Below, piece after piece: positions 1-59,530 of a DNA stretch of 64,000 nucleotides. Source of the DNA: Gracilinanus agilis (taxonomy: Eukaryota). Under the pieces are notes generated by a model, which did no database searches, was not told the DNA's origin, and was given only the letters and a program-made list of their open reading frames with translations. Each line of letters begins with the position of its first letter. The first letter of the stretch is position 1. Made by a program: the position numbers and the translations under genes. The stretch is taken from assembly GCF_016433145.1 (NCBI RefSeq), contig NC_058132.1, forward strand, positions 87,625,480 to 87,689,479, read 5' to 3'.

Positions 1-120
1 TACAGCAACCAGGTACATCAGACAGAAGGGGATGGAGATCCACACGTGCATCTCCTTCAGGCCAGGGATGCCAATCAACACAAACATGTCATAGTTGATG
101 GAGAAGTTGGGAGTAGACAT
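1..120 (-). CDS. Class I (OR52-like) olfactory receptor, 5' 40 codons; gene runs off the left edge
   Basis: Reverse complement of 120..1 translates to MSTPNFSINYDMFVLIGIPGLKEMHVWISIPFCLMYLVAV: N-glycosylation sequon NFS, then the class I motif F-x-L-x-GIPGL...H-x-WISIPFC-x-x-Y. Too short for the ORF track. Intactness beyond the edge is unknown. Confidence 0.85.
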   Translation of the reverse strand, partial: MSTPNFSINYDMFVLIGIPGLKEMHVWISIPFCLMYLVAV

Positions 121-10862: not shown

Positions 10863-11750
10863 ATGTGTTCTTCTTCGTGTCCTACTGATGTACACTGTGT
10901 ACTGATGTACACAGACAGGACAATAGTACAACCGGATGTTGGGATTATACATGTTAAAGGCTATAAACCATTTACTGGAGGGGATCTAGAGATTTTAAAA
11001 AGGAGATTCCCCCAGTTCTTCACAAATCCACATAAGGCAATAAAAGAATTCAAACGGGCAGTTAGGCTGTATAATCCTAATTTTGAAGATGTGGAACTCT
11101 TATTAACAGAACTATTTACCCCAAGTGAAAAAGCTAAATTTCTTGCAGAGACAAGGAACAATCCCAATTTAGCATCGTGGCCTGAGCAACATCAAGATCT
11201 AGAGCTGTCATCTCATGCAAACATGACGTATCTTAGGAGATGCAGGGAGGACTTGGCAGAGGCGATGAGACTTCATGCTAAACGATCAAATGCATGGGGC
11301 TCATTTGAAAAGTTAAAGCAGGGGGAGGAGGAACATCAGAGCTTATACCTAGACAGACTGCTGGAAGCTGGAGAGACTATCCTAGGGTTTAGGGATATGA
11401 CTGCTGAAGACAACATTCAGCATATCAGAAGGCAATTTGTGAAAGGGAGTCAAAATTACATTCAAACATATTTTAGACTGCATTGCCCACAATGGGAGAC
11501 CATGCCCATTGAAGAATTGAGAAAGACAGCAGCTTATGTCCATGACTCAAAGGATAGTGACTCTAAAACATCTAGAAGCTCTGAAAAAGATTGAGAGATT
11601 GCTGAGCTTAAAAAGCAATTGAGGGAAGCTCAGAAAGCCAGGGAGGTGGAAGAAATAAAAAATATGGCTCTGATGTCCACTAATAAAAGGAGCCAAAGCA
11701 GGCCTAGGCAATCTAGTGGCAGTGCTAACAACAAAATTATGAGTTAGGAA
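10863..11750 (+). mobile_element. gag: Endogenous retrovirus gag fragment (capsid p30, gamma-like/ERV1); 243-codon ORF at 10863-11594
   Basis: YKPFTGGDL..K..FPQF..NP...YNPNFEDVELLLTELFT and a major-homology-region match KQGEEEHQSLYLDRLLEA (compare MLV QGPNESPSAFLERLKEA). The frame continues as coiled-coil-like sequence past TGA 11592 to TAG ~11745. No pol or env seen. Confidence 0.85.
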
Positions 11751-21156: not shown

Positions 21157-22107
21157 ATGGATAGCACCAACTACACATTCCACCCAACTGTCATCATTTT
21201 GAAGGCTATCCCAGGCCTGGAGCAAGTTCAGTTTTGGATCTCCATCCCCTTCTCTTCCATGTATGTGGTGGCACTTGGAGGTAACTCCTTGTTGATCATT
21301 CTTATCTGGAAGGAGCACAGTCTTCATGAGCCCATGTATATCTTCCTGGCCATGTTGGCTATGACAGACTTCTTGCTCTGCAACACCATCATGCCCAAGA
21401 TGCTAGCTCTCCTCTGGTTCCAAGCTGGATCCATTTCTTTCCAGGCCTGTATCACCCAGATGTTTTTTGTCATTTTCATCTTTGTCATGGAGTCAACAGT
21501 CCTCCTGGCCATGGCATTTGACCGCTATGTGGCTATCTGCTTCCCATTGAGATATACCATGATCCTGACCCCTTCTGTGATCTGGAAAATAGCAGGATTT
21601 TCTCTGGCCAGGGGCTTGGTCATCACTTCCCCTTTTGTTTTCCTTGTTGAGCGGCTGCCATTTTGTGGAAACAACATCATCGTTGATACTTATTGTGAAC
21701 TGACTAAGATTTCCAGACTAGCCTGTGCAGATATAACTGCCAATAACATTTACACACTAGTGATGTCTTTCTTGTCCACAGGCTTAGATGTCTTTCTCAT
21801 TTCCATCTCCTATGTGTTTATTCTTCGAGCTGTTTTCAGGCTGCCATCCCGTGATGCCCAGTTAAAGGCTTTGGGCACTTGTAGCTCACACGTGTGTGTC
21901 ATACTCATGTTTTATCTGCCAGCTTATCTGACAGTGCTAACTAGCCATCTTGGTTGTGGAGTCCTGCTAGCCAATCTTTATGTGGTTGTACCCCCTGCAT
22001 TGAATCCCATTATATATGGTGTCAGGACCAAGCAGATTCGAGATGTTGTCATATCAAGGCTCTCCCACTTGAGGGGGGAAGGAGTTCAGGAAAACCAAGC
22101 AAATTAA
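21157..22107 (+). CDS. Intact class I olfactory receptor, OR52 family (OR-A), 316 aa
   Basis: ATG at 21157 (MDSTNYT, sequon NYT). Motifs LHEPMY, MAFDRYVAIC, three ECL2 cysteines, KALGTCSSH and PPALNPIIYGVRTKQIR are present. LACADIT and AVFRLPSRDA resemble OR52B2 as recalled. Confidence 0.96.
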   Translation: MDSTNYTFHPTVIILKAIPGLEQVQFWISIPFSSMYVVALGGNSLLIILIWKEHSLHEPMYIFLAMLAMTDFLLCNTIMPKMLALLWFQAGSISFQACITQMFFVIFIFVMESTVLLAMAFDRYVAICFPLRYTMILTPSVIWKIAGFSLARGLVITSPFVFLVERLPFCGNNIIVDTYCELTKISRLACADITANNIYTLVMSFLSTGLDVFLISISYVFILRAVFRLPSRDAQLKALGTCSSHVCVILMFYLPAYLTVLTSHLGCGVLLANLYVVVPPALNPIIYGVRTKQIRDVVISRLSHLRGEGVQENQAN

Positions 22108-29395: not shown

Positions 29396-29446
29396 GTGAA
29401 CAAGCAAAAGAAGAAAGAGGAAAGAACTAACTATATCCTCATATCC

Positions 29447-30379
29447 ATGGCTATAACCAACCAAACCACTTTCCACCCAGCTTTCATCATTTTGATGGGC
29501 ATCCCAGGCTTAGAGAAGCTACAATTCTGGATCTCCATCCCTTTTTGCTCTATGTATTTAGTATCACTTGTGGGCAACTCCTTGCTGACCTTTCTGATCT
29601 GCCTGGAACACAGTCTCCATGAGCCCATGTATCTCTTCCTGGCCATGTTGGCTATGACAGACTTCTTGCTCTCTAATACCATCATGCCAAAGATGCTTTC
29701 TCTTTTCTGGTTCCAGGCTAGGAACATTTCTTTCCAGGCTTGCATCACCCAGATATTCTTTGTCATTTTCATTTTTATCATAGAATCAACAGTCCTTCTG
29801 GCCATGGCATTTGACCGCTACGTGGCCATCTGCTTTCCATTGAGATATACGATGATCTTGAAGCCTTCTGTGATCAGGAACATTGGAGCATTTTCTGTGG
29901 CCAGAGCCCTCCTCTTCACATCCCCTTTTGTTTTCCTAGTCGAGCGGCTGCCATTCTGTGGAAATAACATCATTGCTGATACTTATTGTGAACAAACTAA
30001 GGTTTCCAGACTGGCCTGTGCAGATATAACTGCCAACAATATTTACACTCTGGTGATATCATTTCTGTCTACAGGCTTAGATGTCTTTCTCATTTCTATC
30101 TCTTATATGTTTATTCTTCAAGCTGTCTTTAGACTCCCATCCCGTGATGCCCAGTTGAAAGCTCTGGGCACTTGCAGCTCCCATCTGTGTGTCATCCTCA
30201 TGTTCTACCTGCCAGCCTACCTGACAGTGCTGATCAGCCGCCTAGGCTGTGGGGTCCTGCTAGCCAATCTTTATGTGGTTGTGCCCCCTGCATTGAACCC
30301 CATTATTTATGGTGTGAGGACCAAGCAAATCCGGGATATTATCACATCCAGACTCTCTAGGCTGGGTTTACATTGCTAA
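29447..30379 (+). CDS. Intact class I olfactory receptor, OR52 family (OR-B), 310 aa
   Basis: ATG at 29447 (MAITNQT). Full 7TM motif set as in OR-A. Many synonymous differences from OR-A. Confidence 0.96.
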   Translation: MAITNQTTFHPAFIILMGIPGLEKLQFWISIPFCSMYLVSLVGNSLLTFLICLEHSLHEPMYLFLAMLAMTDFLLSNTIMPKMLSLFWFQARNISFQACITQIFFVIFIFIIESTVLLAMAFDRYVAICFPLRYTMILKPSVIRNIGAFSVARALLFTSPFVFLVERLPFCGNNIIADTYCEQTKVSRLACADITANNIYTLVISFLSTGLDVFLISISYMFILQAVFRLPSRDAQLKALGTCSSHLCVILMFYLPAYLTVLISRLGCGVLLANLYVVVPPALNPIIYGVRTKQIRDIITSRLSRLGLHC

Positions 30380-42054: not shown

Positions 42055-42111
42055 GTGATCAACCTAAGGAGGAAAAGAGAAAACAACATCCTCAGATCCC
42101 ATTCTGATATC

Positions 42112-43065
42112 ATGGCTGCCACTAATCACACCTTCCATCCAGCTGTTTTCCTCCTTTGGGGCATCTCAGGTCTAGAGGAACTGCACATCTGGATCTCCAT
42201 CCCCTTCTGCACCATGTATGTAGTGGCCCTTGGAGGTAACTCCTTGTTGATCATATTTATCTGTATGGAGCACAGTCTACATGAACCCATGTACCTCTTC
42301 CTGGCCATGTTGTCCCTGTCGGACCTTTTGCTCTCCACTGCTATCATGCCCAAGATGTTGGCCATTTTTTGGTTTGAAGACAGAGTCATTTCTTTCCAGG
42401 ACTGCATCACTCAGATGTTCTCTGTCATCGCCATCTTTGTCATGGAGTCAACAGTTCTTCTGGCCATGGCATTTGACCGCTATGTGGCCATCTGCTATCC
42501 ATTGAGATATACCATGATTCTGTCCCCCTCTGTGATCAGGAAAATAGCGGGATTTTCTCTGGCCAGAGGACTGCTCATCACTTCCCCTTTCATCTTCCTA
42601 GTTGAGCAGCTGCCATTTTGTGGAAATAACATAATTACCAATACTTACTGTGAACTTCCTAAAATTTCCAGACTGGCCTGTGCAGATATCACAGCCATTA
42701 ACATTTATACACTAGTGTTGTCCTTCTTGTCCACGGGTTTAGACGTCATCCTCATCTCCATCTCATACACTTTTATTCTCCAAGCTGTCTTCAGACTCCC
42801 ATCCCGTGATGCCCAACTCAAGGCCCTGGGCACCTGCAGTTCACATGTCTGTGTCATCCTCATGTTCTACATACCAGCCTACCTGACAGTGTTGATCAGC
42901 CACATTCAGTATGGGATCCTGCTGACTAATCTCTATGTGGTTGTACCCCCTGCACTGAACCCCATTATATATGGTGTCAGGACTAAACAAATCCGGGATC
43001 ACATCATACGCAGGTTCTCCCAATTGGGCAGGGCATGCTTTGCTGGAGATGTCAGGAATAATTGA
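42112..43065 (+). CDS. Intact class I olfactory receptor, OR52 family (OR-C), 317 aa
   Basis: ATG at 42112 (MAATNHT). Full motif set and no stops. Confidence 0.96.
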   Translation: MAATNHTFHPAVFLLWGISGLEELHIWISIPFCTMYVVALGGNSLLIIFICMEHSLHEPMYLFLAMLSLSDLLLSTAIMPKMLAIFWFEDRVISFQDCITQMFSVIAIFVMESTVLLAMAFDRYVAICYPLRYTMILSPSVIRKIAGFSLARGLLITSPFIFLVEQLPFCGNNIITNTYCELPKISRLACADITAINIYTLVLSFLSTGLDVILISISYTFILQAVFRLPSRDAQLKALGTCSSHVCVILMFYIPAYLTVLISHIQYGILLTNLYVVVPPALNPIIYGVRTKQIRDHIIRRFSQLGRACFAGDVRNN

Positions 43066-45747: not shown

Positions 45748-46907
45748 TAAACATTTATTAATATACATTTTTAACATGGTTACATGATTCATGCTCCTCC
45801 TTTCCCCTTCACCCCCCCCCCCGCGCTCCCCCCACCCATAGCCGATGCGCATTTCCACTAGTTTTGTCATGTGTCCTTGATCAAGACCAGTTTCCAAATT
45901 GTTGGTAGTTGCATTGGTGTGGTAGTTTCGAGTCCACACCCTCAATCACGTCCACCCCGACCCATGCGTTCAAGCAGTTGTTTTTCTTATATGTTTCCTC
46001 TCCTGCAGTCCTTCCTCTGAATGTGGGTAGCATCTTTACCATAAATCCCTCAGAATTGTCCTGGGTCATTGTATTGCTGCTGGTACAGGAGCCCATTACA
46101 TTCGATTTTACCACAGTATATCAGTCTCTGTGTACAATGTTCTTCTGGCTCTGCTCCTTTCGCTCTGCATCAGTTTCTGGAGGTCTCTCCAGTTCGCCTG
46201 GAACTCCTCCAGTTTATTGTTCCTTTTAGCACAATAGTATTCCATCACCCGCATATACCACAGTTTGTTCAGCCATTCCCCAATTGAAGGACATACCCTC
46301 CTTTTNNNNNNNNNNNNNNNNNNNNNNNNNNNNNNNNNNNNNNNNNNNNNNNNNNNNNNNNNNNNNNNNNNNNNNNNNNNNNNNNNNNNNNNNNNNNNNN
46401 NNNNNNNNNNNNNNNNNNNNNNNNNNNNNNNNNNNNNNNNNNNNNNNNNNNNNNNNNNNNNNNNNNNNNNNNNNNNNNNNNNNNNNNNNNNNNNNNNNNN
46501 NNNNNNNNNNNNNNNNNNNNNNNNNNNNNNNNNNNNNNNNNNNNNNNNNNNNNNNNNNNNNNNNNNNNNNNNNNNNNNNNNNNNNNNNNNNNNNNNNNNN
46601 NNNNNNNNNNNNNNNNNNNNNNNNNNNNNNNATAGTGGATTCATGTCCCAAAAGTTGGGCTCTTTGGGTTTATCATACACTGTCTTGCTGATGTCATTTA
46701 TCCCAAGTCTATTCCATTGATCCTCCTCTCTATCTCTTAGCCAGTACCATATTGTTTTGATGACTGCTGCTTTATACTATAGTTTCATATCTGGTATTGC
46801 TAGGCCCCCTTCCTTCACATTTTTTTTCATTATTTCCCTTGATATTCTTGATCTTTTGTTATTCCAAATGAAATTTGTTACAATATGTTTCATTAACAAA
46901 TAACAAA
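45748..46907 (-). mobile_element. Young 5'-truncated L1 spanning the assembly gap
   Basis: 17-bp TSD catattgttcatttttt (45731/46908). The 3' end is nearly identical to 8588-9274. Confidence 0.92.
46306..46631. other. Assembly gap (326 N)
   Basis: Direct reading. Lies inside a young L1. Confidence 0.99.
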
Positions 46908-50084: not shown

Positions 50085-51509
50085 TATAAGCCATATTGTT
50101 AAGGGCCTTGAGTGTCAAACAAAACAGTTTTCCTTTCATTTTAGGAATAATAGGGAGTCATAGGACTGTTTTGATCAAGGAAGTACTATAATCATATCTA
50201 TGCTTTAGGAAAAATCACTTTGGAAATTGTATTGAAGATGAAATGAAGAAGGGAGAAACTTGACATAGGTTTATCAATTAGGATGCATTTGGAGTAGTCC
50301 ATGTGGAAGGTGCTAAAAGCCTGACCCATGATAATGGTCATAAGAGTGGAAAGAAGACATGGGAGGGATGTTGTAAGGGCAGAATCAGCAAGACTTAGCA
50401 ATTGATTAGATATTGGAAAGAAGGAAAAGGTTAATGAATAAAGGTTTTGATGAACCTGTGTTATCAGAAGGATGGTGCCAGGGAAAAGAAGAAGACAAGT
50501 TAGGGAGAAGGGGCAGGTATGGTTAAGCTATGTTTCAGATAAATGTGAAAAATCATCAAAACCCTTTAAACATAGGTAATATAATTATTTTGTGTAATAA
50601 TTTACAAGGGATTCCTATTCACCTATGTATTGGTAATGACACATTTTTTCCCAAATGTCTGCCAGAAACACATTTGCTAATTGGTTGAAGATTCACTTTG
50701 CCTTTTAAAAACTCAGTTTCTTTTTCTGTTTTTTTTCTAAGGTTATATTTTTGCCTTAGTCAGTAGTGGTCACAATCCCCTTGACTGTGGCTACCATCTT
50801 TCAGTACAAGAACTTACTTGCTTCATATCTGTTCTACCTAATACATAGTAGGAGGATAGGATATTTTATAGGTGATATCAGATGTTTGACTGACCCTGGG
50901 CTCTAGTTTCCTGAGTTAGGAACACCTGCAGGACTCTGGTCCCTGCAAAACAGAAATGTCACAGTATAAAGAGTGTGTAAGCTCTTTCAGTCTATAATGA
51001 CCAACTTCAGTTACTTTGCAATTTTGTACTAGGTGACATATTCAAACATTTCTCACTCTCCTCCTATCTATTTCTCATAAAAGTCTAGCCACAAAGCCAC
51101 AAGAGAAAATTTTCTCATGGGCTTTTTTTTCCTCAATGACTTTATAGTATCACTTTAGAGAAAAATAATGGCAAGACTAGGTAGTGTTTTGTTCTTTTTG
51201 CTGTTTAATTTGTTGGTTTTTACATGTAAGTTTATGATTTTTTTCTCATGAGTTAATGCTTCTAAACCTTGTGATATCTCATTTTTTTAGGTGACAAATC
51301 CCAGAAGTGAGGAGGATAAGCAGAATACATCTGTTATTTGTCTACTATCATTGATAGGACCAATTACATTTCTAGCTGTCATCATTTTGAAGGCTATCCA
51401 AGCGCTAGAGAAATTACAATTTTGGATCTCCATTCCCTCCTGTGCTATGTATGTGGTGGCACTTGGGGGTATCACCTTGCTGATCATCCTTATCTGGATG
51501 GAGCACAGT
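50085..51509 (+). repeat. Segmental duplicate of 18970-21321 (without the 20064-20943 LTR insertion)
   Basis: Colinear similarity from gccatattgt (18975/50089) through the L2 remnant, unique DNA, the acceptor and OR TM1. Roughly 80% by eye. Confidence 0.9.
51291..51509 (+). pseudogene. Truncated OR pseudogene (copy of the OR-A 5' end; N-terminus and TM1 only)
   Basis: Aligns to 21098-21321. The start codon context tcATGgatag has become tcATTgatag (~51350), followed by a small deletion. It encodes ILKAIQALEKLQFWISIPSCAMYVVALGG...WMEHS, then homology switches abruptly to 32988 onward. Confidence 0.9.
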
Positions 51510-52425
51510 TTATATTTTACTGTTAGGGATGAAGAGGATACAATCTTTATACAACAAAAGTAAGTGTAACATAATTTCAGTAGAAAGCTCTTGTTAGTGG
51601 GATCAGAAAAGTTCCCTCTTAGTTACTGATTGATAAGATGAGCCTTGAAAAAAGCACGAATTCTAAGAGACTAGCATAAGGAAGAAGTTTATCCACTCTC
51701 TGATCAAGCCTATATGACAACATAAATAATAGGATATGGAAAGTCATGTTCAAGGAAAAGAAAGTGGGATCATTTGACTGGAATACAGAGTGCATGAGGA
51801 CAAATAATGAGAAATGTATGGAAAGACATACCAGAGCCACGCTGTAAAAAGTTTTAAATGCCAAGCTGAGTAGTTCCTATTTTATCCCAGAGGCAATTGA
51901 AGGCATTGAAGATTAACGAATGCAAGTGATGTGTTCAGATCTACTTGTGGTGATTACCAAGAAAATAAATCAAAGGACATATACTAAAAGCAAAGGGTCA
52001 AATGAAGGCCCTTTTGAATACTTATGGGCAGTATCCTGCCCTCCTCCCCCTTCTCAAATCTCATCTGTTCTCCACACTATCCACAGTCTCTTCAACAAAT
52101 TCTTATATTTATTTTGTTTCTTCAACATTCTAATAGTCATTCTTTTGAGAACTTCTAGCTTATTACTATCCTAAAAGTTGACACCCAGAACCAAACATAT
52201 TACTCTGGGTGTATCATAACTAGGACAAAAGGTGAGAGAACCACTAACTCTCTCATTTTAGTATTATACTTCTCTTAATGCAGTCTAAGTTTTCATTAGC
52301 TTTTTGGTTTCCATGTTACGCTATCGATTCACATCGGACTTGCAGTTTACTAAAACCAGTAACTTTTCACATAAATGGTTTATGGTCACATCTTCAACAT
52401 CCTATATTTGCATAGGTGAATTTTC

Positions 52426-58519: not shown

Positions 58520-58576
58520 GTGATCAATCTAAGGAGGAAAAGAGAAAACCACATCCTCAGATCCCATTCTGATATC

Positions 58577-59530
58577 ATGGCTGCCACTAATCACACCTTC
58601 CATCCAGCTGTTTTCCTCCTTTGGGGCATCTCAGGTCTAGAGGAACTGCACATCTGGATCTCCATCCCCTTCTGCACCATGTATGTAGTGGCCCTTGGAG
58701 GTAACTCCTTGTTGATCATATTTATCTGTATGGAGCACAGTCTACATGAACCCATGTACTTCTTCCTGGCCATGTTGTCCCTGTCGGACCTTTTGCTCTC
58801 TACTGCTATCATGCCCAAGATGTTGGCCATTTTCTGGTTTGAAGATAGAGTCATTTCTTTCCAGGCCTGCATTACCCAGATGTTCTCTGTCATCGACATT
58901 TTTGTCATGGAGTCAACAGTTCTTCTGGCCATGGCATTTGACCGCTATGTGGCCATCTGCTATCCATTGAGATATACCATGATCCTGACCCCCTCTGTGA
59001 TAAAAAAAATTGTGGGCTTTTCTCTAGCCAGAGGTATGATCCTCAGTTTCCCTTTTGTCTTCCTAGTTGAGCAACTGCCATTCTGTGTAAATAACATTAT
59101 TACTAATACTTACTGTGAACTGCCTACGGTTGCCAGGCTGGTCTGTGGAGATATCACAGCCATTAACATTTATACACTAGTGTTGTGCTTTTTGTCCACA
59201 GGCTTAGATGTCATCTTCATTTCCATCTCCTACACTTTTATTCTCCGAGCTGTCTTCAGACTCCCATCCCATGATGCCCAACTCAAGGCTCTGGGCACCT
59301 GCAGTTCACATGTCTGTGTCATCCTCATGTTCTACCTACCAGCTTACCTGACAGTGCTGATAAGCCACTTGCACTGTGCAGTCCTGCTGACTAATCTCTA
59401 TGTGGTTGTGCCTCCTGCACTGAACCCCATTATATATGGTGTCAGGACAAAACAAATCCGGGATCACATCATCCGCTGGTTCTCCCATTTGGGCAGGGCA
59501 TGCTTAGCTGGAGATGTCATGGATAATTGA
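58577..59530 (+). CDS. Intact class I olfactory receptor, OR52 family (OR-D), 317 aa; duplicate of OR-C
   Basis: ATG at 58577 (MAATNHT). Colinear with OR-C at a constant offset of 16465 nt. Flanks are homologous. Confidence 0.95.
   Translation: MAATNHTFHPAVFLLWGISGLEELHIWISIPFCTMYVVALGGNSLLIIFICMEHSLHEPMYFFLAMLSLSDLLLSTAIMPKMLAIFWFEDRVISFQACITQMFSVIDIFVMESTVLLAMAFDRYVAICYPLRYTMILTPSVIKKIVGFSLARGMILSFPFVFLVEQLPFCVNNIITNTYCELPTVARLVCGDITAINIYTLVLCFLSTGLDVIFISISYTFILRAVFRLPSHDAQLKALGTCSSHVCVILMFYLPAYLTVLISHLHCAVLLTNLYVVVPPALNPIIYGVRTKQIRDHIIRWFSHLGRACLAGDVMDN

Follow-up and report, generated by a model that had tools for sequence, protein, structure and literature searches.

The window, i.e., the whole 64-kb stretch of Gracilinanus agilis DNA that was analyzed, holds four intact odorant receptor (OR) genes, designated OR-A to OR-D, together with pieces of two others (Table 1). 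Each of the four has an intron-less coding region and an N-terminal N-x-T glycosylation site (NYT in OR-A), and each is matched by the Pfam profile 7tm_4 from position 1 to 277–279 of its 280, with E values of 7e-87 to 9e-95. The motifs MAFDRYVAIC, KALGTCSSH and PPALNPIIYG are present in all of them.

Table 1. Receptor genes, gene pieces and relevant segments located in the window.
Feature	Position	Strand	Description	Evidence or remark
OR-A	21157..22107	+	intact single-exon class I (OR52-like) odorant receptor gene, 316 aa	ORF; Pfam 7tm_4 E 4e-89
OR-A shortened TM6-ECL3-TM7 hairpin	21916..21963	+	LPAYLTVLTSHLGCGV; 6-residue gap after codon ending 21954	HMMER vs 8hti, 8uxv
OR-A ECL2 position 45.52	21700..21702	+	Leu instead of carboxylate-binding His	context TYCE-L
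OR-B	29447..30379	+	intact paralog, 310 aa counted from first ATG	
OR-B short hairpin	30209-30256	+	LPAYLTVLISRLGCGV	Arg at 6.59, unlike any other clade member seen
OR-C	42112..43065	+	intact paralog, 317 aa	P0014
OR-C short hairpin	42871-42918	+	IPAYLTVLISHIQYGI	without Cys
OR-D	58577..59530	+	intact paralog, 317 aa	P0019
OR-D short hairpin	59336-59383	+	LPAYLTVLISHLHCAV	
Truncated N-terminal/TM1 remnant of fifth copy	51375..51515	+	pseudogene fragment	tblastn 74% identity over 47 aa
Start of further, more distant OR gene	1-120	-	gene cut by window edge	loop not reached

The intramembrane pair R4.52-D5.50, considered a class I-specific feature (Billesbolle preprint, 10.1101/2022.12.20.520951), is present in the four genes; in alignment A1, D5.50 was invariant and R4.52 nearly invariant. 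Among receptors of solved structure, the best match to OR-A was the consensus OR52 receptor OR52cs (8hti; E 2e-109, about 60% identity), followed by consOR51 and OR51E2 (E 1e-80), while class II consensus receptors gave only about 1e-48. In the tree described below, the window genes nest among OR52B2, 52D1, 52Z1 and 52H1. On phylogenetic grounds, the short-loop clade to which they belong is class I and of the OR52 type. Two usual attributes of this class were found changed. The stretch from FY to LLANLY, which covers TM6-ECL3-TM7 and canonically has 22–23 residues, has 16 in the four genes. Of the two residues with which class I receptors bind carboxylates, H45.52 is missing in all four, and R6.59 occurs in OR-B alone, both in the window and among all the clade members seen.

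Some details of the gene models should be mentioned. The open reading frames of OR-B, OR-C and OR-D open at upstream GTG codons (29396-29446, 42055-42111 and 58520-58576). The likely true start codons are ATGs, at 29447, 42112 and 58577, while OR-B is publicly modelled (P0009, 294 aa) from a later internal Met. In the public collection, OR-A is P0215, placed within the 90% cluster of Sminthopsis P0001. The fragment lying between OR-C and OR-D is a dead fifth copy, of the OR-A/OR-B type, running from the N-terminus through TM1; its translation breaks after about 60 residues, where the frame enters unrelated sequence and then a stop, and the loop is not reached. The OR start at the window edge is 42% identical to the N-terminus of OR-A, and its presence indicates that the short-loop genes sit within a larger OR cluster.

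The preliminary description had counted 16 residues between FY and LL(A/T)NLY in each of the four genes, against 22 in ordinary class I receptors. When the open reading frames were read again, the quoted strings were found to be exact. The PDB consensus receptors and rodent and hedgehog OR52B2 bore out the ordinary length as a class of 22–23 residues, the stretch of the relatives being six or seven residues longer than that of the clade. HMMER alignment of OR-A to OR52cs (8hti) and to consOR51 (8uxv) placed one clean gap of six residues directly after Gly 6.61. The residues that fall in the gap are HHIPPY in OR52cs, between THRFG and IHILLANLY, and QNIPRY in the lizard sister. As an alignment-free measure, the residues between TCxSH and NPxxY were counted among the 214 proteins retrieved. 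This spacing was 37 in the four window genes, while the 192 non-clade OR52-type proteins matching the pattern displayed, without exception, values of 43 (159 proteins) or 44 (33 proteins), with no intermediates. In class II receptors the same region spans about 41 residues, still above 37. In an alignment of 128 long-loop sequences and 17 clade members (A2), six columns were filled in 128/128 of the former and empty in 17/17 of the latter. With Pfam 7tm_4, clade members aligned 273 residues over 279 profile positions, and long-loop relatives 278 over 278.

A Cys in the short loop had been noted in three of the four genes, and it is indeed present in OR-A, OR-B and OR-D, but it is not conserved across the clade: in A2 this position was Cys in 11/17 members and Tyr in the remaining 6/17. 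A conserved disulfide formed by this residue was rejected on these counts, no partner column being seen in A2. The pattern His6.59-x-x-Cys as a clade-wide metal site was unsupported too, as both residues occurred together in 10/19 listed sequences.

Database searches with OR-A returned 18 proteins with a spacing of 37, which were 76–89% identical to it and included three of the window's own, while the next-best single-receptor matches were about 60% identical. A second search scored residues 225-295 only, so that proteins sharing the deletion should rank at the top; the short-loop proteins recovered were again these 18, with none added, and had scores of 122–139 bits versus 113 bits or less for ordinary single-receptor relatives. 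One 312-aa finch entry scored 160 bits in this search, its pattern spacing being normal. Eight of the 90% clusters, when opened, contributed 25 more sequences, OR-A among them, and the spacing was 37 in all 24 of the 24 that covered the region. In total, the gap was found in all 38 further clade proteins beyond the window. The carriers belong to Monodelphis, Gracilinanus, Sminthopsis, Sarcophilus, Antechinus, Macrotis, Vombatus, Phascolarctos, Trichosurus, Petaurus, Notamacropus and Dromiciops, and span five of the seven marsupial orders; Gracilinanus itself has three further short-loop genes outside the window. Among annotated proteins, the loop-region search included, the six-residue gap was not displayed by any protein of birds, reptiles, eutherians or monotremes.

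The short loop is, then, no novelty of the window's genes, since it is common to every sampled member of a marsupial-wide clade that is already annotated; at the same time, it is not common among annotated OR52 proteins in general, as the uniform spacing of the 192 non-clade proteins indicates. The annotation of the carriers reads only "olfactory receptor 52B2-like", "52Z1-like" or "52Z1P-like". Full-text searching of the non-subscription literature found no description of the deletion, and the shortened-loop feature of these annotated genes appears to be undescribed. In Sminthopsis crassicaudata (L001, 18791-19744), a long-loop OR52 with a spacing of 43 and an intact HRFG lies about 8 kb downstream of the OR-A ortholog, so short- and long-loop genes adjoin in the cluster.

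In a maximum-likelihood tree of 47 proteins, the short-loop genes formed a single clade (support 100/100) whose long stem measures 0.62 changes per site, and one change suffices to account for the deletion. The claims that the deletion predates the expansion of the genes and that it marks a distinct subfamily are both upheld by this result, the deletion being present in every sampled member of the clade. Within it, three well-supported orthogroups were recovered: the first contains OR-C, OR-D and two Monodelphis genes together with genes of Macrotis, Petaurus and Phascolarctos and two of Notamacropus; the second, OR-B with genes of Vombatus, Trichosurus and Petaurus; and the third, OR-A with genes of Sminthopsis, Sarcophilus, Macrotis, Vombatus and Notamacropus. 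Each orthogroup mixes didelphid and Australidelphian genes, which implies that the deletion is older than the split of the living marsupials, dated to some 70–80 million years ago; judged from the tree, at least three deletion-bearing copies were already present before that split. The dS values agree with this, as they amounted to 0.49–0.61 for orthologs and 0.63–0.93 for the older paralogs. With a dS of 0.19–0.20, OR-D is by this measure a recent duplicate of OR-C. Two further observations concern OR-A. In the tree it groups with the dasyurids (98/81, on a branch of 0.014) and not outside all the Australidelphians, a placement that may reflect noise, hidden paralogy or rate effects. Its loop sequence is identical to that of the Monodelphis ortholog P0216.

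Neither the tree nor the searches yielded a close eutherian counterpart. The nearest outgroup was a lepidosaur pair formed by Sphenodon P0049 and Podarcis P0058, the latter annotated as "52Z1P-like", which fall on the clade's side of a 98/91 split. These lepidosaur OR52s are 53–57% identical to clade members and keep the full-length loop, H45.52 and R6.59, while P0058 has Y6.52 as the clade does.

The preliminary description had spoken of an almost absent ECL3. Concerning this point, helix and loop boundaries were taken only from the secondary structure of AlphaFold2 models. In the model of OR-A (mean pLDDT 87), TM6 covers 232-262, with T262 as its last residue, S263-H-L-G-C267 form the loop, and TM7 covers 268-290, starting at G268. 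In that of the long-loop lizard receptor P0058 (pLDDT 90), TM6 covers 236-269, the loop is G270-Q-N-I-P274, and TM7 covers 275-299. Counted from Y6.48, the predicted TM6 ends at 6.57 in OR-A versus 6.60 in P0058, and the helical residues of TM7 before the PP motif are 11 versus 14. The loop block was the part of the core with the lowest confidence, with a pLDDT of about 75 in both models. The hairpin is thus shortened, but a five-residue loop is predicted in both receptors alike, and the expression was an overstatement. The models predict that the loss of six residues costs TM6 and TM7 about one helical turn (three residues) each, and in these terms the short form is more aptly called a hairpin that is one turn shorter, its loop presumably rebuilt from residues of the former end of TM6.

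The residues around the deletion were counted in A2, comparing the long-loop relatives (n = 128) with the clade (n = 17, OR-B (P0009) being outside this alignment). The deletion is accompanied by the loss of the class I carboxylate-binding residues and is part of a larger rewrite. Position 45.52 was His in 128/128 relatives, while in the clade it was mostly Leu or Gln and His in 0/17; position 6.59 was Arg in 125/128 relatives, versus His (14), Gln (2) or Asn (1) in the clade. Next to the latter, 6.58 changed from His (122/128) to Ser (15) or Asn (2), 6.60 from Phe (128/128) to mostly Leu or Met, and 6.61 from Gly (126/128) to a variable residue. The start of TM7 was His in 126/128 relatives and Gly in 14/17 clade members. 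Deeper in TM6, Phe at 6.53 (128/128) was replaced by Leu (15/17) and Phe at 6.52 (121/128) by Tyr (17/17). The resulting TM6 segment, (L/I)PAYLTVL, is almost invariant in the clade, and positions 6.57-6.63 differ between orthogroups.

The meaning of these replacements can be judged from the receptors studied so far. In OR51E2, activation requires R6.59, which acts as counter-ion to the carboxylate of the odorant, and an inward shift of R6.59 and ECL3 is enough to activate the receptor (10.1101/2022.12.20.520951). In OR52cs and OR52E8, R6x59 and H45x52 bind the carboxylate, and their substitution by alanine abolishes signalling (PMC13458081). Simulations indicate that an ECL2-ECL3 gate formed by R262 and Q181 governs ligand entry and closure (10.64898/2026.07.06.736896). 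On the other hand, R6.59 is lacking in 29% of human class I ORs, while 7% of class II ORs carry it (Billesbolle preprint, 10.1101/2022.12.20.520951), so that the loss of R6.59 is not by itself proof of a change of ligand class. The His found at 6.59 in 14/17 clade members could still pair with an acid, and OR-B retains Arg. That H45.52 and R6.59 have been lost in parallel nevertheless lends weight to the suggestion of the preliminary description that these receptors may gate ligands differently.

Compared with OR52cs (PDB 8hti, 8j46, 9wg4) and the OR52 family, the clade shares the 7TM layout, the motifs FYxP, KALxTCxSH, PPxLNPIIYG and MAFDRYVAIC, the cysteines of ECL2 and the R4.52-D5.50 pair. 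It differs from OR52cs in lacking HHIPPY past G6.61, in having other residues in place of the carboxylate ligands H45x52 and R6x59, and in substitutions of F6.52, F6.53, H6.58, F6.60 and the TM7-start His. Human OR51E2 (PDB 8f76), also of class I, has in common with the clade the pivot Y6.48 and the connector. However, its R262(6.59), situated beside ECL3, binds propionate, whereas in the clade position 6.59 is predicted to lie inside the re-formed loop of a shorter hairpin, and it is His, Gln or Asn. The closest functional analogy to the state that the clade may have reached is offered by class II ORs, which mostly lack R6.59 and bind neutral hydrophobic odorants. Unlike them, the clade keeps R4.52 and D5.50.

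It seems reasonable to interpret these data, with a probability of roughly 0.7, in the sense that the four genes belong to a functional, marsupial-specific subfamily of class I (OR52-type) receptors, presumably with olfactory expression, which has a rebuilt extracellular gate and responds to non-acid ligands. An in-frame 18-bp deletion occurred in the stem of the subfamily, before the living marsupials diverged, and removed the six residues past 6.61. A five-residue loop would have re-formed from the former end of TM6 (S6.58, H6.59, L6.60 and G6.61, followed by Cys), and, with TM6 and TM7 about one turn shorter each, the tip of the hairpin would be lower. On the same stem branch the carboxylate clamp was replaced, through the changes H45.52 to L/Q, R6.59 to H/Q/N, H6.58 to S, F6.60 to L/M and TM7-start His to G. 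The long stem would correspond to a burst of change in an ancestral marsupial OR52 gene, after which the design would have become fixed and duplicated, and it has remained under purifying selection. In such receptors a carboxylate would no longer be captured by R6.59 and H45.52, and both the OR51E2-like closure of the gate from R6.59 to ECL2 and the latch provided by a long, mobile ECL3 would be lost. Instead, non-acid ligands would probably be bound under a shorter and more hydrophobic rim (L45.52, L6.53, V6.55 and L6.60), which, together with the few conserved polar groups Y6.52, T6.54, S6.58 and H6.59, would suit other ligands. Below the pocket, signalling would be unchanged, with the FYxP pivot (Y6.48), the R4.52-D5.50 connector and intact DRY and NPxxY motifs.

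A bolder version of this interpretation, which is conceivable but on balance doubtful, is that the lineage has dispensed altogether with the mobile ECL3/R6.59 latch and with the carboxylate clamp, leaving a short, stiff hairpin that serves another class of ligands or another entry route. Neutral or hydrophobic cues might then pass between the helices, an entry route that has been proposed for class II receptors; speculatively, the members with His6.59-x-x-Cys might instead bind sulfur or amine odorants at a site assisted by a metal. If the latch had really been abandoned, the clade would be a natural experiment, indicating that class I receptors can be activated without movement of ECL3.

The remodelling that we favor has to be weighed against an indel fixed neutrally in the ancestor, with no effect on gating and with ordinary OR52 function, including acid ligands bound through, e.g., His6.59. 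This would fit with the five-residue loop given by both AlphaFold2 models, with the retention of all the activation motifs, with the availability of His6.59 in most members and of Arg in OR-B to bind an acid, and with the 29% of human class I ORs that lack R6.59. We consider it unlikely because loop length is otherwise fixed (0/192 relatives deviate from 43/44), and because the deletion coincides, on a long stem, with the replacement of six near-invariant neighbouring positions and of H45.52 (128/128), after which the new TM6 segment LPAYLTVL is almost invariant. This is a pattern of shift followed by constraint.

A different possibility is that the genes function mainly outside the main olfactory epithelium, in an ectopic or other chemosensory tissue, with the gate remodelled for a non-odorant ligand. 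Class I receptors such as OR51E2 are well known for roles outside the nose (PMC13617435). For the short-loop genes this is very improbable, as they lie within an OR cluster, with other OR pieces in the window and the Sminthopsis long-loop OR52 8 kb away, and as multi-copy, lineage-specific duplication is typical of ORs tuned to odorants.

Concerning selection, the dN/dS values among the four window genes were 0.14–0.24 by the Nei-Gojobori method and 0.19–0.30 by YN00. Ortholog comparisons were made with the Sminthopsis, Macrotis and Notamacropus loci, masking 14 OR-A codons over 21502-21541, and gave values of 0.085 for OR-A versus Sminthopsis, 0.138 for OR-A versus Macrotis and 0.119 for OR-C versus Notamacropus. 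A codon model fitted by maximum likelihood to seven clade genes yielded an omega of 0.17. All the copies are in frame and under purifying selection, as had been anticipated from their many silent changes, and the values of 0.085–0.24 mean that the four genes are not drifting pseudogenes. The idea that they are in-frame pseudogenes or genes under relaxed constraint, intact in appearance only, which could draw on their lower Pfam 7tm_4 scores (about 292–318 bits versus 364–426 for relatives), deserves hardly any credence and was rejected, given such ratios at dS values of up to 0.9, intact open reading frames retained in 12–13 genera and in three orthogroups that reach back to the marsupial crown, and the conservation of all the OR hallmark motifs.

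The deletion is real, ancient and clade-defining, and it affects a mechanistically important site in clearly constrained genes. Recent cryo-EM and simulation work centres class I activation on the ECL3-adjacent Arg6.59 and the ECL2-ECL3 gate, and precisely that region has been cut, rewritten and then strongly constrained in this natural variant, in three gene lineages and since before the living marsupials diverged. The clade supplies ready constructs, including the orthologs P0013, P0018, P0216 and P0238 of the laboratory opossum Monodelphis domestica, with which to ask whether the length and mobility of ECL3 are needed for activation, and it can also be used to study the way in which a class I scaffold comes to be tuned to ligands other than acids. 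Moreover, the deletion is a clean molecular marker by which to recognize an OR52 subfamily specific to marsupials, whose members are now filed under three different "-like" names.

Two other elements of the window can be mentioned. Positions 46306-46631, between OR-C and the OR fragment, are a run of 326 N, corresponding to an assembly gap or to masked sequence. On the forward strand, at 10863-11594, there is an open reading frame of 243 aa with a weak match to Gag_p30 (E 6.6e-05; 23 bits, below the Pfam cut-off of 27.4), which is probably the remnant of an endogenous gamma-type retrovirus amid the OR genes.
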